A stretch of DNA of 64,000 nt from Iphione sp. A-MEVVRFRX5 (Eukaryota). The stretch spans positions 72,106,001-72,170,000 of the forward strand of contig OZ320316.1 of assembly GCA_976226885.1 (NCBI GenBank), read 5' to 3'. A model generated the notes under the pieces. That model saw nothing but the letters and a program-made list of their open reading frames with translations, was not told where the DNA came from and did not search any database. The translations under genes and the position numbers were made by a program. Positions 24,301 through 40,459 of this stretch are shown here, piece by piece (position 1 is the first letter of the stretch; each line of letters starts with the position of its first letter).

Positions 24301-24764
24301 GTGGTCACCCTAGTTCTCTGACCAGGTGGATTGTTCACTGGAGAATGGTCCCCATGGACCAGGACCTCAAGGCCATCACCCTTGGTAACCAATGAAGAAC
24401 TCAATGAAGTCTGGCAGATGCCCAGTATTCAATGGCACTAGACGAAAGGACTAAAGCCTTGAAAGAGGCCTGGCCATCAGGATATAGCAAATCTATGGCC
24501 GGATCTGACAACATGCTTACTGGCACCACCCCATCCTATTCATCGGAAGACACCTCTGCCATGTAGATAGATAGATAGATACATATCGCTTTTATTCACA
24601 TTCTCGTGTACAGGGTTGGAGGTCTTCCGGTGAACACTCAACTGTTTGGTAACAATTAAACAAGGTTTAGAATAGGAGATAGAAGTGTATACAAAAAATG
24701 GCAACTCAAATATGTCTAGTTACATTCGAGAGTACATGAACTTATACAGTCAATACGATGCATG

Positions 24765-27554
24765 TCAAAACAAGCTTAATTTATCCAATTCCTTCTTGAA
24801 CTTGGAAATTGAGCCTTCTGCTCTCAGTTCAGGTTTTAAGGAGTTCCAGGTTGATGTCCCCTGATACCAGAAACAATCCTTGGTTTTCTTTGTCTTTGGC
24901 TTATAGAGATACAGAGTTTCTCCCATGCTCCTCCTGGTTAACCTTTTTTGTTTAGTAGGCACACATAGGTTCAAATTCACAAGTTGATGTACCAAAACAA
25001 TACCCTGCTTTTTACCCCTGTGTTCCAGTCCACCCAGGTTCAAGTCTCTACGTAGGGATTTAGCAGATTTCACACTTTTTCTCTTGCACACCATCACTCT
25101 ACGCAAAGCTCTATTATACTCTATCTGCAGGTTCGTCAACATGGTTTTGCTACAATGGATGAGATGACATAATGCATAATCGAATTTAGGTGCAATAAAT
25201 GCTTTAAACAAAATGCCCCTGTCACGAAAACTTAAAAGTCCAGACACCTTTGATAAAGCATATGCTCTCTGTCTTGCTTTCTGCTGCGTGGTCCTGCATT
25301 GTGACTTCCAGGTTAGGCCATCGTCCAGTGCATAGCCCAGGAACATACCTTCATCACTTCTATTGATCATCTTCCCATTGATACATAGGTCGAGGTCCAG
25401 TTTAGGTCCTTTTCCAAAGATCATGTAGAAACACTTCTTGGAGTTTATTATTAAGCCACATGACGCACACCATTTACTTACATCAGACAATCCTCGTTGT
25501 AGTTTGAGCCTGAGAGCCATTAGATTACTTGCCTGGCGGTGCAGAGTAATGTCATCCGCGTAGATAGTACAATCAACAATTGATAAGCATTTTGGTAGGC
25601 CATTTATCACAAGGGCAAACAACAGGGGGCCTAAGTGGCTCCCCTGCGGAACACCTCGTTCTATATTCCTTTTTTCAGATGAGTGGCCATTGCAATGGAC
25701 ATATTGGCTACGGCCCTCCAAGTAAGAGGCCAACCAGCTCGCAGAACGTAGTCCTATGCCGAAATTGGGAAGACACTTTAATAGATATTGATGATTGATT
25801 AAGTCAAATGCGGATGAGAGATCAAGAAAGACCGATCCAAAATGCCTTCCATTGTTGATCGACTCATAGCATTGTCTCAAGAAAAACCCTAACGCTGTAC
25901 TTGTTCCTCGGCCCTTCCGGAAACCATGCTGTTCCGGCCTTAAGAGCCCTTCACGTTCTAGATGATCAGACAGCTTGCTATGAACATGCTTTTCCACGAG
26001 CTTACCCATACACGGTATAATTGATACCGGCCTGAAGTTTTCTTTATTATTTAAGGGGCGCTTCTTTGGTACTGGCGATACTCGTGAGCATTTCCACGCT
26101 GATAGAAAATAACAATAAGTCAGACTTATATTTATCAAAGTTAGGAAGTACTCTACGTTGATAGACAGGGTGTCTTTAAAAACCGTCATTGGTACCCCAG
26201 CCATACCAGTGGGTTTACGGTCATCCAACTGTTTTATGCTTTTCCCCAGCTCTGAAGCAGTCATGAGAGGTACCTCCCACCCATCCCTAGCTGGTTGTAT
26301 GTCCTCACAGATGATTCCCTGACTTCCCCCTGCAGCTAAGGTGTCTACCTTATTCAAGAACCAGTCATTCATTACGTTGGCAGTCTCTGATTCTGGTACC
26401 AGTATGCCTGACTCACTAAGCTTGATCTTTGGGCAGTTATTAACATTCCTAAGGACGTCCCTGTTTAGAACCCTCCAGTAATCCCTCCCTGTAGTGCAGT
26501 TTTTTAATTTAGCTCGGACATACTCTCCCTTAGCCTTCCTCACCAATTTCACTACCATCTTTCTATAAAAACATCCTATTCTGTATGAGTCTACATTACC
26601 GCTTGACCTGTACTCCCCTAGATAGTAGTCCCTATTTCTCATAGCCTCCCTAATCTCTGGGTTCATCCACTGGTGCTGCTTCCTAGAAATTCTGCTTGTT
26701 ACAGGACATAATTCATCTGACGCTGCACGCATAGCAGTCTCAATTGACTCCCAACTTTTGTCTAAGTTTTCAATATCTAAGGGGGGTAATTCTCGCATTG
26801 TGGACTCTAGTGTTTCCATAAGCGTCGATCTGCTGTAGTTCCGAAAAGATCTACATTTGTATTCATCCTTTACAAATTTCTCACGTGGTTTCTTATTCAC
26901 AACGTAGATCGGTAGGTGATCACTTGCCCCGTTATCTCTAGTTCCTACATCGCCAATGTAGTCTATGTTCGTGAAAATTAAATCAATACATGAGTGTGAG
27001 GTTCGATGTATCAGAGTTGGAACCTTGATTAATTGAATTAGTTTCATAGAGCTCATGGCGTTGTCCAATCTACTTCGATTCGATGATTCCGCTAACCAAT
27101 TAACATTGAAATCACCAAGGACGGCGATATCTGCTCGCTTGGGTATTTCTTTTATGACATTTGTGAAGTAATCACACACTGCATCAATTTTTACTGGTGG
27201 TGGACAATAACAGGCACAAACGTATAGTGGTTTTCGTTTCCAACAATTGATTTGTACCCATACAGCTTCTATACATTCATTCATAATGTCTAATGAAGTT
27301 TTCTCAACACAGTCACAATTGTCCCTCACATACATACACAGGCCCCCACCCTTACTTTTTTGCCCCAAGACTCTGTCACGCCTGACCAAGGTGTAAGGGG
27401 TAATAGTCACACTCGCATCAGATATACTTGGAGTCAACCACGATTCTACGATACACATCAATAATGGTTTGTTGTTGTTCAGATAATTTTCAACTTCATG
27501 CAAACGGGGCTGCAAACTTCTTACGTTCCAACTGACAAGCTCTCGACCCTTCAT
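24765..27554 (-). CDS. LINE ORF2p: APE endonuclease + reverse transcriptase (929 aa)
   Basis: EN motifs WNVRSL, IVESWL, GDFNVNW, CIDLIF, SDHLPI; RT motifs NFRPVSI, QHGFRKG, FLDLSSAFD, GVPQGSHLGP, YADD. No stops. Confidence 0.97.
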   Translation of the reverse strand: MKGRELVSWNVRSLQPRLHEVENYLNNNKPLLMCIVESWLTPSISDASVTITPYTLVRRDRVLGQKSKGGGLCMYVRDNCDCVEKTSLDIMNECIEAVWVQINCWKRKPLYVCACYCPPPVKIDAVCDYFTNVIKEIPKRADIAVLGDFNVNWLAESSNRSRLDNAMSSMKLIQLIKVPTLIHRTSHSCIDLIFTNIDYIGDVGTRDNGASDHLPIYVVNKKPREKFVKDEYKCRSFRNYSRSTLMETLESTMRELPPLDIENLDKSWESIETAMRAASDELCPVTSRISRKQHQWMNPEIREAMRNRDYYLGEYRSSGNVDSYRIGCFYRKMVVKLVRKAKGEYVRAKLKNCTTGRDYWRVLNRDVLRNVNNCPKIKLSESGILVPESETANVMNDWFLNKVDTLAAGGSQGIICEDIQPARDGWEVPLMTASELGKSIKQLDDRKPTGMAGVPMTVFKDTLSINVEYFLTLINISLTYCYFLSAWKCSRVSPVPKKRPLNNKENFRPVSIIPCMGKLVEKHVHSKLSDHLEREGLLRPEQHGFRKGRGTSTALGFFLRQCYESINNGRHFGSVFLDLSSAFDLINHQYLLKCLPNFGIGLRSASWLASYLEGRSQYVHCNGHSSEKRNIERGVPQGSHLGPLLFALVINGLPKCLSIVDCTIYADDITLHRQASNLMALRLKLQRGLSDVSKWCASCGLIINSKKCFYMIFGKGPKLDLDLCINGKMINRSDEGMFLGYALDDGLTWKSQCRTTQQKARQRAYALSKVSGLLSFRDRGILFKAFIAPKFDYALCHLIHCSKTMLTNLQIEYNRALRRVMVCKRKSVKSAKSLRRDLNLGGLEHRGKKQGIVLVHQLVNLNLCVPTKQKRLTRRSMGETLYLYKPKTKKTKDCFWYQGTSTWNSLKPELRAEGSISKFKKELDKLSLF

Positions 27555-27638
27555 CTTTAAGATATCCTTACGTTAAGCCAAGTAAAGACGCCGCAGAATA
27601 TTTGCACATCTAAGATTGTACCGTTCGCAGGTAATAGT

Positions 27639-28238
27639 CTAGATCAGCCGCAGGACATAATCACCCACATCGCAGGCCCAATTATAGCATACATGGTGAT
27701 TTGCCCTCCCTGTGCTGTCGACCTCCTCTGAGCGAAATGTTATAACCGAGTCCGTACAGTCATTCACAGGCCAGGCCGTTACTGGAGTTTCATGTCCTGA
27801 TAATAGGTTTACTTCCTCTACAGCCAGGTTGAAGTGGCACACTTCAGCATTGAGAAGTGATTGCTCCAGTTGTTGCTCAGCCGGTAGTTGTATCCCATGG
27901 ATGGGAAGGAATAGTACCGCCTGCCCCATCATGTTGGTGAAGTGGTTTGAGATTGACATCAGTTGTGTTGGAATATTGATGTCCACATCAGCATCGTTAG
28001 CATCACGGAGCATCCATCGTCCTCCATGATTTCTTACAAATGTGTGTAGCCCCAGCCTGACGATAGTCAGGCAAGAAGGGACTGGTGGCAATGACGCGAC
28101 GTTGTTGGCTAAGTCCTGTATACCAACACCTGGGTACACATGCGTCGATATGTGGAACCGCTCATAGTAACGCTCCTGAACGTAGTATCCTATCTCGATG
28201 CCTGTCTCATCAGTTATGTAGCGGACCAAGTGATTCAT
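27639..28238 (-). CDS. Middle ORF of element A: degenerate SGNH-hydrolase-like protein (199 aa)
   Basis: ATG start. Aligns by eye to the element B middle ORF (VYPGVGIQDL vs VYPGATIDSI; FNLAVEEVN..HETP vs VNQRIVAIN..VPTP), but the Ser, Asn and DGxH catalytic blocks are not recognisable. Confidence 0.6.
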   Translation of the reverse strand: MNHLVRYITDETGIEIGYYVQERYYERFHISTHVYPGVGIQDLANNVASLPPVPSCLTIVRLGLHTFVRNHGGRWMLRDANDADVDINIPTQLMSISNHFTNMMGQAVLFLPIHGIQLPAEQQLEQSLLNAEVCHFNLAVEEVNLLSGHETPVTAWPVNDCTDSVITFRSEEVDSTGRANHHVCYNWACDVGDYVLRLI

Positions 28239-28295
28239 CTCTGCAAGTAATTCATTTTGTTTTTAACGATTATATAACAGAAGCAAAACAGTCAG

Positions 28296-29834
28296 TTACT
28301 GCGGTTCGTTAGAAATCAGGCCTTTACTACGGAACTCCTCACGTATTGCCATTAGTGCTCTGCCTACAAGGTTCCCACCCCTATGTTCGCGACCCACCTC
28401 ACAAGAGTTCCATAGATTATGACCAGAGCCTAATTCAAGGTCATAGGTTGCTTCAGTCAGATACAGGTCACAAGTTCTCATTAAGTGATCACTGATCAGT
28501 GAGTTGCGCATAAACTTACTTCGATAGATGTCAGCCAGGACAGACAGTCTGTTGTTATCCCAGTTCGGGCTTGTATGTAGTCGATTCCCGATCGATCTGA
28601 TTGTCACCGGATCACATGTGTTCAGTATTCTTTCTGCGACCTCACAGTTATTGGTGGACACCGCTTTGGTATGTTGGAACGCCTGTTCCGCTGACGAGTA
28701 TTCCCTACCCTTGTATTCAACTTCACACCGGTATAGGTTAGAGAGTGGTACGTGAACACCACGAAACGCCAGTGTATCGTCAGAATGATATGTGTTTGAC
28801 TCCACCAGCGTCAGCTCTGGCGGTAGCTCTTCAAGCCTATTGTGTTCATACGCTACCCCGTCTATTGTGAGGCTAATCCCCGTGACACTCGCCCTATGAC
28901 CCAACTCCCGAGCATGCCAGGCAATCGAGTGTAAATCACGGTGAATTGATTGCAAGTTCTTTGGTATGTCTTCATTAATGTAGACGTTCCGGCAGTCTCG
29001 GTGTTTGAATAGTCTGAAACTTCCTTTGTACGCCTGATCTCTTGCCCACTTGCGTTTGAAAACAACCAATATGTTCCTTTCGCGTCCCTCTTTGTAGGCA
29101 CCTAGCCTTTTAGCATCCAATATTTCGTCCCGGTCAAGAATTTCATCTATCACTCCTAGAATGTCCGTTACTTTCTTGACTGTATCTTCATCCTCATTGT
29201 CGTCTGCCCCTTGAACTATTAAATTCCGTTCCCGCTCCCTCAGCAAGGTGTTATAATCCTCATCTGTTTCACTCTCTTGTACTTCTTCCCATCCACTTAG
29301 AGTATTCTGCACTTCTATCATACGTTTTTCCAAGTTGTCAATTTTTGTGTCTAGGATACCTGATCCGTCAACCTGGTTCACTGCTTCTGTGACAACTGGC
29401 TCAGGAGTTTTTCTTTCCAGAGAATTCAGCTTACCTTCAAGGGCTTGTATTTTGTCCGTTAATTTTTTGAAACATATTTCCAAGTCCTTTGAGCAACTGC
29501 ATACCGCGTTCCCTTTATTATCCAATTTGCTCGATAATTCGGTTATGCTGCTTTGTTGAGTTTTCAGGATCTCAATGATTTCCGATATGCTCCCATTCAA
29601 TTGTGTCAGTTGTTTGTCCACGTCATCGTTTGCTAAGCTCTGGCCGTCGTCTTCCACCGGCTTATCCCACGTACGATCACCGTTGGGAGTGGACGGTAAT
29701 AGGTCGCCTTGACCGTTCTCCAACCGTTGAGAGTGACTCGACCTCGTTACAGGTGCATTTGAACCTCCTTGTACTCCATTTCCAGGTGGTTTGTCTTTCT
29801 CTTTGCCTTTTTTCGGTTTTGTCCAGTTTGTCAT
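28296..29834 (-). CDS. LINE ORF1p: coiled coil + L1-type RRM/CTD + C-terminal NADAR (YbiA-like) domain (512 aa from first ATG)
   Basis: First ATG is at 29834 (the track start at 29900 is TTG). Heptad region; RERNLIVQG..AKRLG..NILVVF..VYINEDIP..LTIDG; NADAR motifs AF..PLSNLY, SAEQAFQHTKA, W...RL..SKF, LTEATYDLELGSG, GGNLVGRALMAIR at about 28778-28329. Confidence 0.9.
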   Translation of the reverse strand: MTNWTKPKKGKEKDKPPGNGVQGGSNAPVTRSSHSQRLENGQGDLLPSTPNGDRTWDKPVEDDGQSLANDDVDKQLTQLNGSISEIIEILKTQQSSITELSSKLDNKGNAVCSCSKDLEICFKKLTDKIQALEGKLNSLERKTPEPVVTEAVNQVDGSGILDTKIDNLEKRMIEVQNTLSGWEEVQESETDEDYNTLLRERERNLIVQGADDNEDEDTVKKVTDILGVIDEILDRDEILDAKRLGAYKEGRERNILVVFKRKWARDQAYKGSFRLFKHRDCRNVYINEDIPKNLQSIHRDLHSIAWHARELGHRASVTGISLTIDGVAYEHNRLEELPPELTLVESNTYHSDDTLAFRGVHVPLSNLYRCEVEYKGREYSSAEQAFQHTKAVSTNNCEVAERILNTCDPVTIRSIGNRLHTSPNWDNNRLSVLADIYRSKFMRNSLISDHLMRTCDLYLTEATYDLELGSGHNLWNSCEVGREHRGGNLVGRALMAIREEFRSKGLISNEPQ

Positions 29835-30779
29835 TGTTCCTTTACTGGTTTTTTCCTTTTCAGTGTTGTTTGGAACTGTTTTTGCACTATTTGATAGCAA
29901 TTCTTACGGAGCGACCCTTTTTTCACGTCCGACACGTCTTTAAGGGGGGAAATTTTATTTTATGTCGAGTATATCCTCCTCAGTTCCCATTGTAAAGGTT
30001 GTGAATCCCTTTTGAAGAGGACTAGTGAGAACCCATCGTCCTCTATTGTTGTAGATGATTGGAGACCAAGTAAAGAGAAAACAATCTAAGTTTAATTTGA
30101 CTTTCTGCCTCAGCATGGCATTAGGCCAGGAGGCAGGGTTCTTGTCAGGACCAATGGTACTTATAATTGGAGAGAACATTCAAGTATGGAGGTGGAATAG
30201 CAGGTTCCTGAAAAAGGGCTATAAAGCAAAAATGGATACACATCCAAAAATGACGTCCTTCTCCAGTAGTCTCTGAAGAAGGCAAGAATATCTGTCCGAC
30301 ACTGTTAACTGCCTCCTTCCAAATGAAGGTGACAAGGATCACACCCTCGCAGTAGCATGGGCCAAGCCTCATCTCTGGGATCCTGAAATCACAGGGGAAC
30401 ACGCATGGTGCTTTGAATCATTGAGTACACAAAGATGTGAATATATACCCCCATTCCTGCATCTGGAAGAAAGACCTGTATATCTCCACAGTCACTTTCC
30501 CTAATAACAGATAATTACACCAGTGAAAATTTGTGTCAAATATTTGCCAAATTTCTCCAAAAAGTATTGTACCAGAATGATGTCACATGATATGAGACTG
30601 TGTCATATTACTCTGTCTCTTCATGTCCCTTGAGCGAGATGGAACATATTTGCAACATGTCTAATTTCCCTTTCCACTGCATTAAATCTTCATCAGCACA
30701 AGATAAATTCTCATGGATGACAAGAGAAAATCTGAAGAGGGTCTGCCTCTGGTGTGAGGAAGTACACAAGTAAAGCTTA

Positions 30780-31720
30780 CCTCCTTGATGGCCATATTCC
30801 ATTTGTGTATCCCTGCACTGATATTTTACAGATAAAGGAGCTCCGTATTATCTTTGTTGTGAATCCAAACAAATGAAGGGATGAAACAATTCCTGACAGA
30901 GACGATCATGACTGAAGCTAAAACCCTTGTGGGCAGTTGGAGGGCTAGGACTGGAAAAACCTTAATTCATTTGAAAAAGGCAGAAGCTAGCTTCTGTTAG
31001 AGAAAAAACTCTTTCAGGACCCTCAGGGCTGCAGCAGACCTCAACATGTGCTCTTGCTGCGCCGCAGCAAGAAGAGATCACTTATGATGAAGAAACCTCA
31101 CCTCAGGAAGAAACTCCACCTAAACCCATAAAGAAAACAAGGACACCAGAGGAATCTGCCACAACCAAAGAGTCTTTAGGTGTCAATATTAGTGACTTAA
31201 GATTTAAGCATTACACAAATGATGGTGTATGACGAGAAACCAGTGGATTTATTTATCCTCAGTGGTGACGTTGCAAGAGAAGCGGTTGGAGAAGGTACAA
31301 CTCAGGAAAGACCAACTAATGTGAAGTTTACCCTTGGGATGGCCATTATTGATGTGTGCATCCTTCCATTGACATTTTACAGATAAAGGAGTTCCATATC
31401 CTAAAAGAGATGATCATTAATTGAGGCTTAATACTTTGTGTGGAAAAGAGACCTCACCTCAGGAAGAAACTCCACCAAAACCCATAAAGAACAGAAGGCC
31501 ACCATAGGAATCCACCACAACCAAAGAGTCTTTAGTAATGTGAATATTCCTATGGGCACACCTTCACTGGAATGAATTATTGCACAAATAATTTTGTTTC
31601 ATGAGATGCCACCGGATTTAACTGTCCTCAGTGCTGTAAGAGAAGCAGTTGTCTCCTCTCCTCTAGTGATGGCAGTAGAATGTGTGGAAGAAGGTAAAAC
31701 TCAGGAAAGACCAATTCATG
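30780..31720 (+). repeat. Degenerate duplication of about 350-400 bp modules
   Basis: ACCTCACCTCAGGAAGAAACTCCACC..ACAACCAAAGAGTCTTTAG at about 31096 and 31450; GATGGCCAT..TTTTACAGATAAAGGAG at about 30790 and 31340; AACTCAGGAAAGACCAA at about 31300 and 31698. Confidence 0.75.
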
Positions 31721-32288
31721 CCCCTCTGATGACGAGTGGGCTTGCAGAGGAAGCACAAGCTCAAAAGGTGCCATCTCAAGCATCAGAAACACCTATATAT
31801 CTCCTGGTTGAAGATACTGCTCCGAACAAGGAGAACTAGCTCCAGAAGTGGGCTTTTCTGCCTTTCCCTGTTAGAACAAATGAAAACGTGCCTCCTATAC
31901 CTCTTGATGTGTCGACTGCTGCTATAGCTGATAGATCAGTAAATTCAGGGACTGCTTAGAGAGATCCGGTAAGTGTTGATACAGGTTACCTGGAAACCCA
32001 CCGTGGGGCAAGAGTGGCTGCCCCATTTTTTTTTTTTATATTCAAAACGTTTATTTCGAGACTTATACATGTAAATGTACATTCCAGTCCGAAGTGAAAT
32101 GATGAAACAATAATGAAAATAATTAAAACAAATCATCACAAGGTTAGGTGATAGGGTTAGCCATAACAGTAAACAGAAAAAGTTCAGTCTATAAATCGTA
32201 CGCACAACACAATTTCCACCAGTTCGAGCAAAGACAGCATTTCAACAAATCAAATCAACTATGTCACCTCAGCACACCGCCCCCCCCT

Positions 32289-35102
32289 TTATACATCTCT
32301 TTCCATTACTGCACGTGTAACCATATGCGATCTTCTTCGCAACTTTAAATAACTTCTGAATTGCTTCAGATTCAAAAGAGTTTTCTCCCTGGGTAACCTT
32401 GCCCATAGTAGACATGAATGATAACAGGTGGACCACCTGTATTTCTCCCTTCTGGGCCTATGCGGGATTACTCTAATCCTATCATTCTGTCTCAAAAAAG
32501 TACCGGATGACATCCTAAGTGTACCTGCAGGAGTCATATGTGACGACACCTCTTCAAACATAATTCTCAGTAGGGTAGTGTCCCGAATTTCCTCAAACTC
32601 TCTCTTCACAGATTCTCTGGAAACATCTTCTCTGGGTGTAAAAAGGCTGTATAGACGCCTACGCAGGGTCACAAACTTCTCAAATATTCTACCATTTGTC
32701 TTAACAAGAAGACACGAACCATAATTAATCACAGGGAAAGCAAGGGTCAATACCAGCCTTGAAAGTATCTGTCTATTTACCAAGGGACGAATCCTATTAA
32801 GCGTTCTATATTTATCATAGCCTTTACGAAGTAGCGCATTCAAAAACGGGGTCCAGGTTAGTTGGTCGTCAATAATCACTCCCAAATACTTATATGTATG
32901 GACTCCTTGAATAATTATCCCTTTACCAAGATTAAGTTCCACATCCCTGACTATGTTACTGTAGCTGGGGCACAAGAATTTAGTTTTATCAAAATTTATC
33001 TTGATCCTATTAACTTCAGACCAATTTATAACCTGTATAAGCGCTTCGCGCATTTTTCCCATGCAAGTTGTCCTATCACAATCAGTCGCTACCAGAGCTA
33101 CATCATCCGCATACAAAAAGCTCTCCACACCTTTTACATATTCAGGTAAATCATTAACAAATATCAGAAATAATGTAGGCCCCAAAACAGAGCCTTGCGG
33201 GACCCCTGTATATACTGTAGCATAATCTGAAAATACCTCCCGATATCTAGTTCTTTGACGACGACCTCTTAAATAGGCCCTCACCCATGGGCATATGGCT
33301 CTTAACCCAATTCCACTTAGTTTCTTTAATAAAATGCCATGATCGACAGAATCAAATGCCTTTGCAAAATCAATGAAGGATACACAGACAAACCTACCAG
33401 TGTTTAAGTTATTATGAACTAAGTCCAGCAGTCGAGTTATTGCTTTATCGGTACCAAATCCTTTCCTAAAACCATACTGGCAGTTGGTGAATTTCTTGTT
33501 CGCCTCCATGTATTGATGCACCCTAGAGTTAACCATTTTTTCAATTATCTTCACCCCAACTGATAAGAGGCTAATGGGCCTAAAATTTTTGATTTCAGAA
33601 ACTGACTTCCCTTTATGAATAGGTACTATTATCGCATCCTTCCATTGTTGCGGTAATTCACCCAGGCGGATACTTTTATTATAATACTCCAATAATTCAA
33701 GTGAGAAATCCAAGAAAATGTTTTTAATTAGTTTTGTCGGATACTCTAATATATTAGACGCTTTATTGGGGAGATCTAATATAGCATCCATCCATTCCTC
33801 AACACTAAATTCCGGACAACCCATGTGCATAGTACTGTGCGTTGCTATGTGATATACATACGGAGTACTAGAGTTCATGGGGATCAGCTCTCGGACTATT
33901 CTTACATAATATTCATTAATGAATTTTGCACATTCCTCGTCACCCATTACATTACCTTGATTATCTAATAGAGAAGGATCAACAGATTTAGCTCTTAGAC
34001 CCAGCTCTCTATTTAAATGGGCCCAGAAACGATTGGGAGAGGTCATATCTGCATCAGCCTTATTTACTATGTAATTGCGTCTAGCAGCACGAACTTCCTT
34101 TCTAACTCGCTGTCTCGCCAGATTTCTGATCAATCTGTCATATAAATCACCAGTTTCATTGTATCTTCTCGTTGCACGATCTCTATCCTTGATATATTCA
34201 TGGAGCTTCCCTGTAAACCAAATTGGGGTATTAGCAGATAACTTCCTAGATTTAGTGGGGGCTAAGTCAGTCCTAATCTGTTCCAACTTCGATTCAAACA
34301 TATCCCAGCCAGATTGTATGGAGGATCTATTGAACATATCCCAGTCAAACTCGTTAAGAATATTCCTAACATCCACGACCTTAACAGCAGCCCAGTTTCT
34401 ATAGGATACTTTTAATTTCATTTCAGGGCCGTGATGCTGAATAGTACAACTAATTATGTAATGATCACTTATAGAACAGTCAATCACGGTACAGTCAATC
34501 TTAGGCAAAGGTATATTAGAAAAAGCCAAGTCAATAGTTGTCATAGAACTTCTGGTTACTCTCGTATATTGCTTCACAAGCTGAATGCAAAAGATATTAT
34601 CTATCACTTCCAATAAATCTTCCTTTTGCTTAGAGTCTACCGCCCAATTTACATTTATATCCCCCATTATTAAAAGCTGAATGTCCCCATGGATTTCACG
34701 AATTTTATTAACATCTGCAGTGATAGTTTCCAACAAAACTTGTAATTTACTATTTGGGGGGCGATAAACCATGCCAACATATATCGATTTATTTTTGACA
34801 CAGTCAATTCTCATCCACGCCATCTCAAGATCATTTGAAGTTGATATCATATTATCGATAGAGCTTATATTATTCCTCAAATACGTCTTAAAATAAACAA
34901 GTAACCCACCACCACACTTACCAGTTCGATCATACCGAAAGAAATTATAGCCACATATTTGCAGTAAACCATCGGAGTAAGTATCAGTCAACCAAGTTTC
35001 TCCAACTATGAGACAATCGGGAGAATGGGTTCTGAGCAAAATTCTGATCTCATCCATTTTGCTATATAGTGCACGAACATTCAAATAAAAGATCTTAATC
35101 AT
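32289..35102 (-). CDS. LINE ORF2p: APE endonuclease + reverse transcriptase (937 aa)
   Basis: ATG start. EN motifs LNVRAL, VGETWL, YRPPN, GDINVNW, TIDLAF, SDHYII; RT motifs NFRPISLL, QYGFRKG, FIDFAKAFDSV, GVPQGSVLGP, YADD, YKYLGV. No stops. Confidence 0.97.
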   Translation of the reverse strand: MIKIFYLNVRALYSKMDEIRILLRTHSPDCLIVGETWLTDTYSDGLLQICGYNFFRYDRTGKCGGGLLVYFKTYLRNNISSIDNMISTSNDLEMAWMRIDCVKNKSIYVGMVYRPPNSKLQVLLETITADVNKIREIHGDIQLLIMGDINVNWAVDSKQKEDLLEVIDNIFCIQLVKQYTRVTRSSMTTIDLAFSNIPLPKIDCTVIDCSISDHYIISCTIQHHGPEMKLKVSYRNWAAVKVVDVRNILNEFDWDMFNRSSIQSGWDMFESKLEQIRTDLAPTKSRKLSANTPIWFTGKLHEYIKDRDRATRRYNETGDLYDRLIRNLARQRVRKEVRAARRNYIVNKADADMTSPNRFWAHLNRELGLRAKSVDPSLLDNQGNVMGDEECAKFINEYYVRIVRELIPMNSSTPYVYHIATHSTMHMGCPEFSVEEWMDAILDLPNKASNILEYPTKLIKNIFLDFSLELLEYYNKSIRLGELPQQWKDAIIVPIHKGKSVSEIKNFRPISLLSVGVKIIEKMVNSRVHQYMEANKKFTNCQYGFRKGFGTDKAITRLLDLVHNNLNTGRFVCVSFIDFAKAFDSVDHGILLKKLSGIGLRAICPWVRAYLRGRRQRTRYREVFSDYATVYTGVPQGSVLGPTLFLIFVNDLPEYVKGVESFLYADDVALVATDCDRTTCMGKMREALIQVINWSEVNRIKINFDKTKFLCPSYSNIVRDVELNLGKGIIIQGVHTYKYLGVIIDDQLTWTPFLNALLRKGYDKYRTLNRIRPLVNRQILSRLVLTLAFPVINYGSCLLVKTNGRIFEKFVTLRRRLYSLFTPREDVSRESVKREFEEIRDTTLLRIMFEEVSSHMTPAGTLRMSSGTFLRQNDRIRVIPHRPRREKYRWSTCYHSCLLWARLPREKTLLNLKQFRSYLKLRRRSHMVTRAVMERDV

Positions 35103-35540
35103 TTGTATGCAACTCTACAGACAAAGGTTATCATACAATTATTAATCCCTAACCACCGAACAACACAATCACTTAAATTAATGAAATAATAATGAGTCAT
35201 ACGGTACACTGTAGTAAGAGAAACTCTAGTATACAGCATACTGTATGTAGTGGCATGGCACTGAACGGCAGGACACAGATCGTCCAGTGTTTGGCGGACC
35301 CACATTAAAGTCAGATATGTACAAGTAAGTAAATAATACTCACATAACCACTACGAAATCGACACATTAATCCGTTATTCAAGGCACCTTCCAGTAGTAT
35401 CCGCAGTATGTAGACAACCACAATGGCTCCATCTGTGATACAACTCAGTTACAGAGTATGAACAACAGGTCAACCAAATTGTCAAATTACACCATACAAC
35501 AACGGCGACAGGATAATTTTGGTGGTATAAGAAGCAACAA

Positions 35541-35946
35541 CCACCTTAGCACTCAAAATCAAAATGTAATACATATATATAACTTAACGAGAATATTATA
35601 GTAATTACCAACTAAGACAACTACCTTACTACTCAAAATCAACAAGTAATACCATATATAGAGCTTAACGAGAAAATTAAATTAATTACCAGTGTTCTTT
35701 CATTAATTACAACATATTAATAATAATTTAATGAGACTTCCAGACAGGGCCGACAGCCCATCTAGTTATCCACATTTTCATAAATTATTACAAGAAGTAA
35801 TCAAAAGCCTCAATTTAATTACGCTACAACATTTGCAAGAATAATACCCCTAATAGTGAGCAAATGAGACTTCCAGACAGGGCCGACAGCCCATCTGGTT
35901 ATCCACATATACATACCAAATCCTAGGTATTATGGGCCGACAGCCC
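35541..35946. repeat. Duplicated segments in the inter-ORF spacer of element B
   Basis: A 46-bp unit at 35730-35775 and 35863-35908 (one mismatch), a third partial copy at 35934-35946, and an imperfect pair of about 70 bp near 35541 and 35622. Confidence 0.9.
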
Positions 35947-36165
35947 CTGTATATTTGCAATATATTCACTTGCGCAGCAGAATTTATATGAATTATCAAA
36001 GAACAGCCATACAGATAGGTGCAGATTCAGCTTATGCTATCAGGACAAACTGCTCCAGGGCCAGTTATCGCATGTTCCATCAACATCAGAAGACCATATC
36101 CCACGTCATCCATGGTAAGTCAGATCGGTGGATCTTAATACCATAGGGAACCATCCCCTGCTTCA

Positions 36166-36846
36166 TTAGAAGTAAAGTCGATGGAATAGCCTGATTACAG
36201 AGTCGATCATGTACTTCACCAGGTATAATTTCCATCTGCTGGCAAGATGACATCCATCTTCTAGTCGTCCCATCCGATTTCGCCACATCCCATCTTTCCT
36301 AGAATGCAGCACCTTGTAACACCACGGAGTCGGGACGTGGTGGGCTTCATTAATCGCTACAATGCGCTGATTAACCAAGTAAGTTGCCTCATTAATTACC
36401 CGCTGTACCTGTCGACTATCCCGGGAAGTAGCCACGTAGCCATTCATCAGGTAGTTCATCCTTGAGTAGTCTCGGGTAAAAATCGTTGATATCATGATTG
36501 AGCTAGAGGGATACCGACATTGGATCCTAAATCTTGAGTATCTGTATTTCGTCTCCAACTTACTGGCAGCTTCAAGCGGGGAAAAGTAACGTGGCATTAC
36601 ATACCTTATGCGCTGTCCGTCGTGCCCTGTCAGGCGACGGCGGACGGTAATGTTGTTTGAGCCAACGAGTAGTATTATAACAGATGGAGCCGGCGACAGG
36701 TTGAGCCGAAGAAATTCCTCTGTAATACTATCAATTGTAGCACCAGGATAAACCAAGACTCTGACATTCCAATTCCACCTTGCAAATAATTCCTCCAAAC
36801 CTCGGCCATGACTTGAGGCCACAACATAAATTGAAGTTTGGTCCAT
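36166..36846 (-). CDS. Middle ORF of element B: SGNH/GDSL-hydrolase (esterase)-like protein (226 aa from first ATG)
   Basis: First ATG is at 36846 (the track start at 36909 is GTG). Four blocks in order: YVVASSHGRG (I, Ser), YPGAT (II, Gly), LLVGSNN (III, Asn), EDGCHL (V, Asp/His). Confidence 0.85.
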   Translation of the reverse strand: MDQTSIYVVASSHGRGLEELFARWNWNVRVLVYPGATIDSITEEFLRLNLSPAPSVIILLVGSNNITVRRRLTGHDGQRIRYVMPRYFSPLEAASKLETKYRYSRFRIQCRYPSSSIMISTIFTRDYSRMNYLMNGYVATSRDSRQVQRVINEATYLVNQRIVAINEAHHVPTPWCYKVLHSRKDGMWRNRMGRLEDGCHLASRWKLYLVKYMIDSVIRLFHRLYF

Positions 36847-36936
36847 TTTGCGGTGGTAGCCACGTCGATATCCCGCACGCTTTACAAAAAGTGACCACAG
36901 GGTGAACACACTGTGACCACCGGTCAGGCGAGGTCA

Positions 36937-38379
36937 TTAGGCGCGTTCGGGAACTGCCACCATGGGTTCGGACCTGGCAAGCAGATCCGACCTCACTTGC
37001 TCAAGTAAACGACCAAGGTTGTTTTTGCCAGCAAATGTTCCATCCGTGAGCTCCTTGGCACCCTGAGTATGACCAGCGCCCCAGAAAAGCGAACGGCTGG
37101 ATTCGATCAGGATTTCATTCTGTGTCGATTTAAGGTATTCACCAAGCCATGAAGTATGTGAGAATTTCACTTGTAGGATCTTTAGCATCTCGGCAATTTT
37201 AACTTCATCCCACTTCCCAGAGGGCGGAATTCGATGTTTCACAGCCAGGACCTCATCAATATTTTTCGTTGTCAGTATCTCATTAGCCAGATTGGACACC
37301 TTAGTAAAGTCAGCCTTTCGCCATTGGTAACAATGCTCCACAGAGTGAAATTTCTTGCCATCATAGTTCAGATCCACCGGATATTCATTGGACAATGGTG
37401 ACAATGAAGACGAGAAGAATAGACGCCCCCCGTCATGCACGTGTGAAGCTTCATGGACTTTAAGCCTAGGTGGGGCCTTAGAAATATCCGCGGAGCTGTA
37501 TACTGAGCCATCAATCTCCAGCAGCTCCCCTCGCAATTTTACCTTGGTCGTAGGTGAGGTTCTGGATAGGTATCTTTTTGCTTGCCCAAGAACAAACCGC
37601 CTTCTCCTAAGGGCAGGTGGTTCATCCCTGTAAATCCAAATCTTGGATCCCTTCAGCTTGTTTTTATGTTTCATGATGTCATAGATCAGATCTTGTCTTA
37701 GGAATTTCACCAGGATAGGACCATTCGGTGATGCACCTTGCCTAGTAATACGAAAGGCTGTATCTATATCAGCCGGCGTGATGCTGACGCCGATCGTTAG
37801 GGCAACCTGAATTATCTGTGGAATTACATCACGTCTCACCTCCAGGCCAGGACCATCGACAAATAATGTCTTTTGTCGATTAATCTTATCCATCTCATCA
37901 CGTAATTTCTTAACGGCACTCTCCCCAGATTCATTCCTTAGCTGATTAACCTCATTGCGGAGGGTTTTATTCTGTTCATGGAGGGAATCAACCTCAGCAC
38001 GTAAATTCTGAATACTCAGTTCATGACTCTCAACCCTCTTTGAGATGGTCCCCATCTTCTCAAGGACACTGTCAAGCTTAGTATCAAGTTTGTTCAGTCT
38101 AACATCAAAAGAGAGACGCATACTCTTTAATTCATCCAGCAGAGATGTAGTTACATCAACAGGCTCCTGCGGATTAGGATCGGTTTCAGATTCATCATTT
38201 ATCCGATCGGAAGGAGGGCTATTTATCCGCGGCCTCTTTAGATCTCTCTGATCATTAGTATTAGGTTTCGGAGTTTCAGTCAGGTAGTCTAAAATACTAC
38301 TTTGACCCTTAGCAACAACAGTCGTGTCCACTCTGTCCATTTCAGGGCTCAAAGGTGCATTTACTAACGCACCAGCCAT
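36937..38379 (-). CDS. LINE ORF1p: coiled coil + L1-type RRM/CTD + C-terminal NADAR (YbiA-like) domain (480 aa from first ATG)
   Basis: ATG at 38379 in ACTATGG context. Heptads; NRQKTLFVDG..DIDTAFRI..GPILVKF..IWIYRDEP..LEIDG; NADAR motifs FF..SPLSNEYP, SVEHCYQWRKA, WDEVK..M...KF, LIESSRSLFWGAG, GKNNLGRLLEQVR at about 37428-36982. Confidence 0.92.
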   Translation of the reverse strand: MAGALVNAPLSPEMDRVDTTVVAKGQSSILDYLTETPKPNTNDQRDLKRPRINSPPSDRINDESETDPNPQEPVDVTTSLLDELKSMRLSFDVRLNKLDTKLDSVLEKMGTISKRVESHELSIQNLRAEVDSLHEQNKTLRNEVNQLRNESGESAVKKLRDEMDKINRQKTLFVDGPGLEVRRDVIPQIIQVALTIGVSITPADIDTAFRITRQGASPNGPILVKFLRQDLIYDIMKHKNKLKGSKIWIYRDEPPALRRRRFVLGQAKRYLSRTSPTTKVKLRGELLEIDGSVYSSADISKAPPRLKVHEASHVHDGGRLFFSSSLSPLSNEYPVDLNYDGKKFHSVEHCYQWRKADFTKVSNLANEILTTKNIDEVLAVKHRIPPSGKWDEVKIAEMLKILQVKFSHTSWLGEYLKSTQNEILIESSRSLFWGAGHTQGAKELTDGTFAGKNNLGRLLEQVRSDLLARSEPMVAVPERA

Positions 38380-40459
38380 AGTGGTAAACACAGCGGCAGG
38401 ACAGCTGCACCTAAAAATAACCGGCGCTCAACATGGAATATCAAGGCAATGTCGGTTTTCTCTCCGAATTTCTCCCCAATGCATGAACAACAAAGGCACA
38501 AATTAACTCACAGTATTCCCTGGTTAATAACCAATATCTGTGTCGACACGCAGTGGCCCAACCGCACCATTCATCAAGCGTTCATGTCCATTTTGTGTCC
38601 TGCCGCTCACCGCGCGTCTAACCCGGTCGCGCCATGTCCCATCAGAGATACCTGGCCTCTTACTCCTTGGCCTTAATTGACAAGCTGGCTACCGGAGGAC
38701 TGGAATATGGGAACATCCTTGGCCTTCTTTGTGATAGCCCTCATGTGCTCCTCCCAGGATCCTGGTGCCCGAGAACAGAGGACTAAGGCAACAGGGGAGT
38801 TGAGGTCTCTTGTCACAATGTGACTGTGGGGCACATATCTAAGATCTGGAGGGAGAGCCAGTATTGTGAGTTTCCACCTTCTGTGCTGGACAATCTGCTC
38901 ACGATGACTTTGGATGTAGAGCATCAGACTGCAACATCACTTTGGGGATTCCTGTGTCAATTATTTAAGCCAGTGGTGTTGTCCATGAGGATCGGGAGGC
39001 ATCAATAAACATTAAATTAATGTTTTCTGGACTGTCTTATTTCTCATATTGGATACCATAGCTGCCGGAAGATGGATCCTTTGTACACACTCTTATTCTT
39101 TTCTTTAGATAGTATCATGTAATGCTCTACTTCATAATGATATTTGATTGTTCTTATGAACCTTGCTGGAGGTGCTGGTCTTATTTTTAAAAAATAATAA
39201 ACTCCCTTAAGGAGCAGGAATAAAGCATATCCGTGTTCTTTTTGCATATATGACTGCTTCTATATTCTTTCAAATAAAAGAATATTCTAAAAATCTAATT
39301 AGAATTAATACAGATCCCAAATGTTCCAGGGAAACTCTGAAAGACGTACATTTGGAGGAAATGGAAATTATAGGATCATATCTTCATCAAGTTCTCATTA
39401 TGAACAAGTAAAATCAACATCTTTCATAATTTTTTAAAGTTCTTTATTCATTAAAATCCCTTTTCCTCTTAAAGGAAGGGTGAATGTAGCAGGCACAATG
39501 TTATAACTTCCTGGTACAAGTACTGCATTTTTGATAAACGTGTGGTTTTGGACCTGCCAGATCATGTTCTGGTACTCTGACTCTGTTGATCTTGCAATTC
39601 AGTAAAAGTTGCTGGATCAGGGATTGCAAAATAGGTACTTTGACATATTACATATATTGTGAAATCTTTGTGCAATGTTGCCAAAGCCTGCATGTATATA
39701 TATTAAAGGAAGGACTTTTTGCGAATAAACATTCACTCTTTGCACTTCATGAGAGACACACATAGCAGACACTGCACTTGGAGAGAACCAGATTTCTGTG
39801 CGTGGATATCCTTTATTTCATAGTAACTCAGCAGCTAGACTATGAACCATCACTCTCATACCAGGCCCACGTTTATAATACTAAACCAGGTGGGCATATG
39901 CCTTGCACAAACTAGTGTGAGGTTCCCTGAAATGGCATGAACGGAGGTTGGGAGAGTGTGTGTTATTGCCAGTAGAAGAGGTTATCTGATGGCCGTAGGT
40001 GGCAGGAAAGTGTGCAAGACAACCATCTCGGATTTCCAAAGATCACGCGTTTTTCTTTGATGAAAACATCTTACATAGAATGGTTGCTACCTTTAATTCC
40101 CCAGCTTTTCACTAAGTTAAAGTTTATAACATAGAAAACCCCTAAGCTTTGGATTTTTCAGAGGCAATCGTAATTTACTATTAAACACTGTTGGAATCCG
40201 GAAATAGTTTTTTTTGTCCAGGTTGATCCAGTTTGGATAACGTTACTTAGTAAACCTGCATACTGTCTTCGTCAGTGCTGCAGTCAGTTTGCAGTTGCAC
40301 TCAGATGCTGCAAGTCCTGTAAATACCGAAGTTCCTGCACATTGATACATTGATAGGTTCGATAAATGTCTGTACTTTCAGAAAGATTTGCATAAAAAGT
40401 TCTTTTACTATAAAGAGAACATACAAAAACATCACAAAACACTGGTTTTGAAAAAAAAT

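Follow-up and report, generated by a model that had tools for sequence, protein, structure and literature searches.

Two LINEs in an Iphione genome with a NADAR domain closing ORF1p and a separate SGNH-fold protein: members of a large invertebrate retrotransposon group

The stretch of DNA considered here (the window) comprises 64,000 nucleotides of the genome assembly of Iphione sp. A-MEVVRFRX5 (GCA_976226885.1, contig OZ320316.1, positions 72,106,001 to 72,170,000), and contains two long interspersed nuclear elements (LINEs), called A and B in what follows. Each encodes three proteins, namely the product of a first open reading frame (ORF), ORF1p, that ends in a NADAR domain, a separate middle protein assigned to the SGNH hydrolase fold, and a combined endonuclease and reverse transcriptase (EN-RT). 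The reading favoured here, to which a probability of roughly 0.55 may be attached if the mechanism proposed below is taken as part of it, is that A and B are members of a very large and ancient three-protein group of APE-type LINEs belonging to lophotrochozoan-like invertebrates. The C-terminal domain of ORF1p probably removes ADP-ribose, to judge from its sequence. An earlier examination of the window, made from its letters alone (the original prediction), had pointed to the shared layout, and what became of its various claims is told where the relevant results are given.

Both elements lie on the minus strand of the window, and all six of their ORFs are free of stops. Element A occupies positions 24564–29933: alignment of a 91%-identical copy from elsewhere in the genome (L025; loci are numbered here with the prefix L) gives its span as 29933–24568, while its 3′ tail, read directly, is (ATCT)n and ends near 24564. 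Between a 5′ untranslated region of about 100 nt and a 3′ untranslated region of about 190 nt there follow ORF1 (28296–29834, 512 amino acids (aa)), the middle ORF (27639–28238, 199 aa) and the EN-RT ORF (24765–27554, 929 aa), the two gaps between them being 57 nt and 84 nt respectively. Element B occupies positions 32026–38637, its 5′ end being the figure given in the original prediction, and has its ORF1 at 36937–38379 (480 aa), its middle ORF at 36166–36846 (226 aa, with the start placed at an ATG also present in the other copies of B) and, beyond a long spacer, its EN-RT ORF at 32289–35102 (937 aa); its 3′ end consists of AATAAA and then an A12 tail at about 32037–32026. One copy with 90–96% protein identity to B (L014) spans ORF1 through to the start of the endonuclease. 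No clear target-site duplication was seen for either element on inspection by eye. In BLASTP comparisons of A with B the ORF1 proteins are 27% identical (E 9e-20) and the EN-RT proteins are also 27% identical (E 7e-79), and no alignment was returned for the middle ORFs. That two LINEs with a common three-ORF layout lie here, with every frame open, had been claimed from the outset, and the coordinates and Pfam matches bear it out.

The EN-RT ORFs match the Pfam families RVT_1, Exo_endo_phos_2 and Exo_endo_phos, with E values of 1.2e-36, 3.9e-10 and 2.6e-6 for A and of 4.9e-36, 2.7e-9 and 3.7e-7 for B. With an endonuclease followed by a reverse transcriptase in one ORF, multiple copies in the genome and 3′ tails, A and B are APE-type non-LTR (long terminal repeat) retrotransposons. 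The best solved relatives of the EN-RT are R2 (E 6e-14) and then human L1 ORF2p (E 5.5e-10, covering the reverse transcriptase core only), the C-terminus carries a motif of the form W-x-x-L-P...F-K/R...L, and neither zf-RVT nor any other zinc-knuckle family is matched by either protein in Pfam at E <= 1. ORF2 proteins of the L1 group are about 1,200–1,300 aa long and possess a C-terminal zinc-knuckle region, features that are not seen in the present proteins, which have 929 and 937 aa and give no zinc-knuckle match. Taken together, the length of the EN-RT, the presence of Exo_endo_phos_2, a slightly stronger match to R2 than to L1, the microsatellite tail of A and the C-terminal motif argue against canonical L1/Tx1 and would fit elements of a CR1/L2/Jockey-like kind.

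For ORF1 of element A the likely start is the ATG that it has in common with three other copies (L025, L027 and L034); read from the TTG at 29900 with which the frame had been listed, the protein has 534 aa. A NADAR domain (Pfam PF08719, curated cut-off 35.1 bits) is matched at residues 384–524 of A ORF1 (E 5.1e-20, 72.8 bits) and at residues 333–470 of B ORF1 (E 1.2e-21, 78.1 bits). Alignments were made of the window proteins with their genomic copies and then with 60 homologues from public data, and Pfam finds the domain in all 60 of the latter (best E 4.6e-44); searched against the PDB, the profile of this part has as its best solved relatives a NADAR of Phytophthora nicotianae (8BAU, E 1.6e-15) and E. 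coli YbiA (2B3W, E 1.2e-12). The N-terminal part of ORF1p gives many generic coiled-coil matches in Pfam, and profile positions 58–139 match coiled-coil chains in the PDB, trimeric ones included. Between the coiled coil and NADAR, the profile built from the 60 homologues matches human L1 ORF1p (2YKP and 2YKO, E 7.3e-10), together with 2LDY (E 4.5e-9) and the isolated RNA-recognition motif (RRM) 2W7A (E 1.2e-5). The match to 2YKP ends at chain residue 177, corresponding to profile position 124 of 160, that is, past the RRM and short of the whole C-terminal domain, and Pfam Transposase_22 was undetected in all 60 homologues. On these profile matches ORF1p is of the L1 type (type II). The C-terminal extensions present in longer homologues contain no Pfam domain and give no match to hidden Markov models of the middle ORFs. 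The prediction of a coiled coil, an RRM region and a NADAR domain, the last of these at both C-termini, is thereby upheld.

NADAR enzymes remove ADP-ribose from ADP-ribosyl-guanine (PMC11543638), and for this hydrolysis three positions are needed, E43/E88, K50/K95 and E125/D171 in the P. nicotianae and E. coli C7 proteins respectively (Schuller et al. 2023, PMC11543638); the lysine K50 of the P. nicotianae protein binds phosphate, and a glutamate at the third position is what defines the YbiA family (PMC11543638). Among the 60 ORF1 homologues the equivalents of E43 and of E125 are both glutamate without exception, and the equivalent of K50 is basic in 56 (lysine in 49, arginine in 7). Two positions that contact the pyrophosphate are more variable: D130 corresponds to aspartate in A, to serine or alanine in B-type copies and to aspartate in 39 of the 60, while W133 corresponds to tryptophan in B, to leucine in A-type copies and to tryptophan in 48 of the 60. 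Between the equivalents of E125 and D130 the ORF1 domain has one residue deleted. That one ligand contact is changed in each of the two window lineages is what might be expected if the domain were a non-enzymatic reader of ADP-ribose or of marks derived from NAD, guiding the element's ribonucleoprotein particle (RNP) to ADP-ribosylated chromatin or DNA breaks. We regard such a role as very unlikely, given that mutation of the glutamates and the lysine abolishes hydrolysis and that so strict a retention of exactly these residues is the usual sign of catalysis.

Within the Iphione sp. genome (1.18 Gb were searched, and all copy counts are lower bounds) there are hundreds to thousands of copies, distributed over all the large contigs. 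NADAR candidates number at least 4,416, and each of the 150 that were scored exceeds the Pfam cut-off, the sites lying mainly within open frames of 450–700 aa; candidates for the two middle ORFs number at least 592 and at least 2,433, and the scored copies of these range in identity from 100% down to 27%, the majority being free of stops. In all 38 of the other loci studied the order ORF1-NADAR, middle ORF, EN-RT is preserved for those parts that are retained (an ORF1 remnant was undetectable in one A-type locus, L039), where for B-type copies the linkage to EN-RT rests on flanks of 1.5 kb with which they were fetched. Ratios of non-synonymous to synonymous substitution rates (dN/dS), calculated by the Nei-Gojobori method for pairs of copies with dS of 0.03–1.2, are 0.05–0.27 for NADAR, 0.04–0.17 for the remainder of ORF1, 0.04–0.23 for the middle ORF (0.09–0.18 in the A type) and 0.07–0.17 for EN-RT, so that all three proteins are shown to be under purifying selection. 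The original prediction had itself named neutral evolution of the NADAR segment and NADAR ORFs unlinked to EN-RT as outcomes that would speak against it, and both are rejected by these results. One further site in the same genome (G000:C22:27636416-27636865, minus strand) scores far above the LINE copies, matching the full Pfam NADAR profile at 176 bits (E 5e-49) within an open frame of 329 aa, and is a candidate for a canonical host NADAR gene.

The group extends well beyond the Iphione sp. assembly. When 1.84 billion representative proteins were searched with a profile, ORF1 relatives turned up in 1,573 clusters at E <= 1e-30, of which the best 150 are nearly all full-length ORF1-like proteins; the few taxon labels available indicate Annelida and Mollusca. 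Word-indexed protein searches with the middle protein and ORF1p of B came back blank, but these blanks are uninformative, because the exhaustive profile search found thousands of ORF1 relatives. The three-ORF layout recurs in the European Nucleotide Archive (ENA) assembly ERZ25767047 (L041 and L046) and in the Logan runs ERR14368248 and ERR14368249, while in ENA ERZ26222911 there is a two-ORF variant (L042–L044 and L047) in which the NADAR-bearing ORF1 is followed by EN-RT after a gap of 370–600 nt, with no middle ORF. The persistence of the layout down to about 27% identity and in other assemblies, together with dN/dS values of 0.04–0.27, supports the earlier suggestion of an old and selectively maintained lineage. 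Also met with in this connection were four proteins, among them XP_048255699.1 from Haliotis rufescens (P0002, 4,240 aa, annotated as an abalone host gene) and three others (P0001, P0003 and P0014), that contain 3–7 tandem NADAR-like stretches and have no ORF1-like N-terminal part; such tandem-NADAR proteins could be either a host source or a host sink of the LINE domain.

The middle ORF had been taken in both elements for an SGNH hydrolase, and the SGNH label is upheld in each case, on differing grounds. For A the fold stands. An AlphaFold model calculated from a 22-sequence alignment has pLDDT 91 and pTM 0.89, and at E <= 0.001 a Foldseek search of the PDB with it retrieves 101 matches, all but a few of which are GDSL/SGNH-family hydrolases or designed scaffolds that take this fold as their basis, with GDSL esterases matched over the whole length at E 1e-6; structural alignment to these esterases using VIA-align gives Z scores of 15–18 and root-mean-square deviations of about 3 Å over 165–184 residues. 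The neighbours of the A protein in the ESM Atlas are likewise GDSL families. What does not stand for A is the catalytic apparatus, since TDETG is found in place of GDS and GLHT in place of GxN, DxxH is absent, and the positions are unconserved; catalytic residues are missing from all 22 A-type copies, over an identity range of 25–90%. On the evidence of the predicted model together with these losses, the A-type middle protein is an SGNH fold stripped of the serine-esterase machinery, and is not an active serine esterase.

For B the position is rather the converse. Residues S12, G62, N64, D197 and H200 (within SSHG, GSNN and DGCH) are invariant in 8 copies, and the neighbours of the protein in the ESM Atlas are GDSL clusters, but its AlphaFold model, calculated from a shallow 8-sequence alignment, was too poor for a fold search (pLDDT 44), and its profile gave only a chance match when compared with the PDB. 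As for the SGNH profiles of Pfam, against which the original prediction had proposed that the middle ORFs be checked, all 8 B copies match Lipase_GDSL_2 weakly (E 1.3e-4 to 0.01, 16–17 bits), falling short of the cut-off of 32.9 bits, and A-type copies give no Pfam match. The SGNH label therefore rests on the fold for A, and on motifs plus Pfam matches below the cut-off for B. Profile comparison, joint alignment with relatives and the fold evidence tie the two proteins into one collinear family.

Relatives in other assemblies help to show what has happened to the active site, even though their middle ORFs give no Pfam SGNH match. One has a textbook set of motifs (L049, GDS...GGICN...DSLH), and two others also have a complete set (L048, ADS...GGICN...DGLH; L041, DSRG...DGIH). 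In a B-like locus with a 1.2-kb spacer (L046:7538-8200, ENA ERZ25767047) the middle ORF has lost both the serine of block I (ADDRA) and the aspartate of block V (NGAH), a loss independent of that in the A type. With catalytic residues missing both from the A type and from this locus, there must have been two or more losses of catalysis in a protein that was itself retained. It could be argued that the middle ORF is nevertheless an active lipolytic esterase serving membrane-linked steps of retrotransposition, as has been proposed for CR1/L2 elements, and that the A type is a decaying remnant: B-type copies, L041, L048 and L049 have complete sets of S, G, N and D-x-x-H, and the esterase of the element ZfL2-1 is active and binds liposomes. 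We think this quite unlikely. The A-type frames lack their catalytic residues in 22 of 22 copies and yet are open, with dN/dS values (0.09–0.18) like those of EN-RT, and are therefore not decaying; serine and aspartate were lost independently in L046; and two-ORF relatives exist that have no middle ORF. What we favour instead is that the SGNH protein probably acts by binding and not by catalysis, most likely as a partner that binds lipid or membrane or that serves as a scaffold, a role like the one suggested for the esterase of ZfL2-1; catalysis would then be dispensable, which would explain its repeated loss.

A separate observation concerns an annelid cluster in the ESM Atlas (449 aa, 88 members, 100% of them with Pfam NADAR), whose model aligns to the A-type middle fold with a TM score of 0.68 over 163 residues. 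The predicted fold of this cluster suggests that NADAR-SGNH fusions occur in some species, although sequence comparison gave no confirmation of this.

LINE ORF1 proteins are usually viewed as RNA chaperones that lack enzymatic domains, a rule with one known exception, the esterase type. In the mechanism proposed here, ORF1p would coat the element RNA in cis and so carry the N-glycosidase into the RNP and on to where target-primed reverse transcription takes place. At that site the NADAR domain would strip ADP-ribose from bases of element RNA, cDNA or target DNA, and removal of the ADP-ribose would reverse a modification by which the host hinders reverse transcription or integration. Of this scheme, the likeliest part is the delivery by ORF1p of an N-glycosidase to the RNP, where the enzyme would free the nucleic acids of the element from base-linked ADP-ribose; a role of the domain as ADP-ribose eraser, or in counter-defence, is plausible. 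The more demanding proposition, that the ORF1p domain is an active base-ADP-ribose glycohydrolase on the LINE particle that undoes restriction by host ADP-ribosylation of retroelement RNA, cDNA or target DNA, can be put forward only tentatively and is on balance doubtful. If it were true, nucleic-acid ADP-ribosylation would constitute anti-transposon and antiviral immunity in molluscs, annelids and their relatives, and NADAR erasers would have evolved in LINEs and, independently, in an oyster nidovirus, in parallel with DarG against bacterial DarT.

Several observations count against the reading favoured here. The substrate of E. coli YbiA consists of riboflavin intermediates and not ADP-ribose. 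Each of the window lineages has lost one ADP-ribose contact (D130 in B and W133 in A), so that the substrate or the activity may differ from those of known NADARs. Searches of the genome for pierisin-type ADP-ribosyltransferases (PF03496) and for DarT (PF14487) were blank, a result that is uninformative in that the control genomes were silent too. Finally, the existence of two-ORF relatives implies that the SGNH protein is inessential to some NADAR-bearing LINEs.

The same residues would serve equally well if NADAR took part in the element's own replication chemistry and no host restriction were involved, for instance by clearing base- or end-linked NAD or ADP-ribose adducts at the nicked target, or by processing an RNA end. 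The conserved catalytic residues fit this as well as they fit the removal of a host mark, no host base-ADP-ribosyltransferase turned up in the genome (in searches whose controls were silent), and De Souza and Aravind, as cited in PMC11543638 and PMC12477816, tied NADAR to RNA processing. We nonetheless consider it unlikely, as most LINEs replicate without NADAR, and as ADP-ribosylation of DNA ends of the PARP type is phosphate-linked and is known to be reversed by macrodomains, PARG or ARH3 rather than by NADAR. An ORF1p that delivers a base-directed ADP-ribose eraser to the RNP continues to be the reading preferred.

A feature peculiar to the B lineage is a long non-coding spacer that separates EN-RT from the middle ORF and in the window covers positions 35103–36165 (1,063 nt, minus strand). 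B-type spacers are 0.9–1.5 kb long and vary in sequence among subfamilies, that of B having no conserved ORF and showing sequence conservation only with the close copy L014. In the window the spacer contains three hairpins with the apical sequence GGGCTGTCGGCCC, at 35747–35759, 35880–35892 and 35934–35946 on the minus strand (the window has 3 matches to the apical motif, against 0.15 expected). In its general form, GGGCUGUYGGCMC, the apical motif occurs 2–6 times per locus in all 12 B-type loci (that in the window and L014–L024), always on the sense strand, and it is absent from A-type and foreign loci. The stems vary among copies with complementarity kept, paired cells making up 71% as against 59% after shuffling, a level reached by none of 500 shuffles, and the covariation score of the stems is 0.344, compared with 0.165 for shuffles and 0.08–0.18 for controls in which the position was slid. 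Numerous G-U pairs in the stems are what a structure formed by the sense-strand RNA would show, and no Rfam family was matched in the hairpin region. The array would probably act in the RNA of the B lineage, and may bind a protein or assist in starting translation of the EN-RT ORF.

The 2.1 kb that separate A from B (window positions 29934–32025) contain only short ORFs with no visible relation to either LINE. With two full-length elements in the same orientation and 2 kb apart, the region may be LINE-rich.

An enormous and long-lived LINE group that keeps an N-glycosidase domain under strong purifying selection is a pointer to nucleic-acid ADP-ribosylation in the conflict between transposons and their hosts, hinting that elements fight or exploit ADP-ribosylation in invertebrates. 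That catalysis by the esterase was lost more than once, while its fold was kept under selection, bears on the purpose of LINE esterases more generally, and the family offers natural pairs, active with inactive and two-ORF with three-ORF.

It remains to compare these elements with systems already described. The original prediction knew of no earlier description of the architecture, and for one part of it, a LINE that combines an RRM-type ORF1p with a separate SGNH ORF, none was found in the literature. For the other part there is one: several Crassostrea gigas LINE families that Repbase labels 'Tx1' are mentioned as having a YbiA-family NADAR in their ORF1 in a paper on Ectocarpus transposons (Genome Biol 2025, PMC12477816), beyond which the literature on NADAR, YbiA or DUF1768 in combination with retrotransposon, LINE or ORF1 yielded nothing. 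The architecture is thus partly anticipated in print, and is not wholly new. Known here from the description in that paper, the C. gigas elements resemble A and B in having NADAR inside the ORF1 of an invertebrate LINE; the account of them consists of one sentence and a supplementary alignment (PMC12477816), and mentions no middle ORF and no analysis of selection or of catalytic residues. The EN-RT of A and B is unlike that of L1/Tx1, having no zf-RVT match and a similarity to L1 ORF2p below that to R2. With the type II ORF1p of L1 (coiled coil, RRM and C-terminal domain) the ORF1p of A and B shares the coiled coil and the RRM region, to which it adds a C-terminal enzyme domain.

SGNH esterases have been known in CR1, L2 and RTEX LINEs since 2003, as ORF1 itself (Kapitonov and Jurka 2003). 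These elements, like A and B, encode an SGNH-fold protein upstream of EN-RT, but there the esterase is ORF1p, fused to a coiled coil and with no RNA-binding domain, whereas in A and B the SGNH protein has an ORF of its own, the second, and ORF1p is of the RRM type. The ZfL2-1 esterase binds liposomes independently of its catalytic residues (PMC3905857). An equivalence between the histidine that follows the serine of the B middle protein and H191 of ZfL2-1 was considered and dropped, as H191 sits in block III (PMC3905857), four residues before N195 of that block; the equivalent in the B protein is, on inspection, leucine. Stand-alone GDSL-like proteins are also found, as ORF3, in the Vesta LTR and Athena Penelope-like elements of rotifers, where that of Athena-L has no catalytic residues (PMC5408684). 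These belong to a different class of retroelement, and their GDSL ORF follows pol rather than lying between ORF1 and EN-RT.

As regards NADAR, it is found together with YbiA-like and Macro domains in PONV1, a nidovirus of oysters (PMC12377751), which so provides another RNA-based selfish replicator of molluscs that carries the domain, with a logic analogous to that of viral macrodomains; in PONV1 they are domains of a viral polyprotein, and their function is likewise putative. By analogy this fits a pressure acting on the RNA parasites of molluscs, and proves nothing. The DarG1 antitoxins, the P. nicotianae protein 8BAU and YbiA (2B3W) are of the same domain family and share the catalytic Glu, Lys and Glu with A and B. 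Known NADAR glycohydrolases are mostly free-standing, single-domain proteins (PMC11543638), whereas in A and B the domain is fused to the RNA-binding protein of a retrotransposon.

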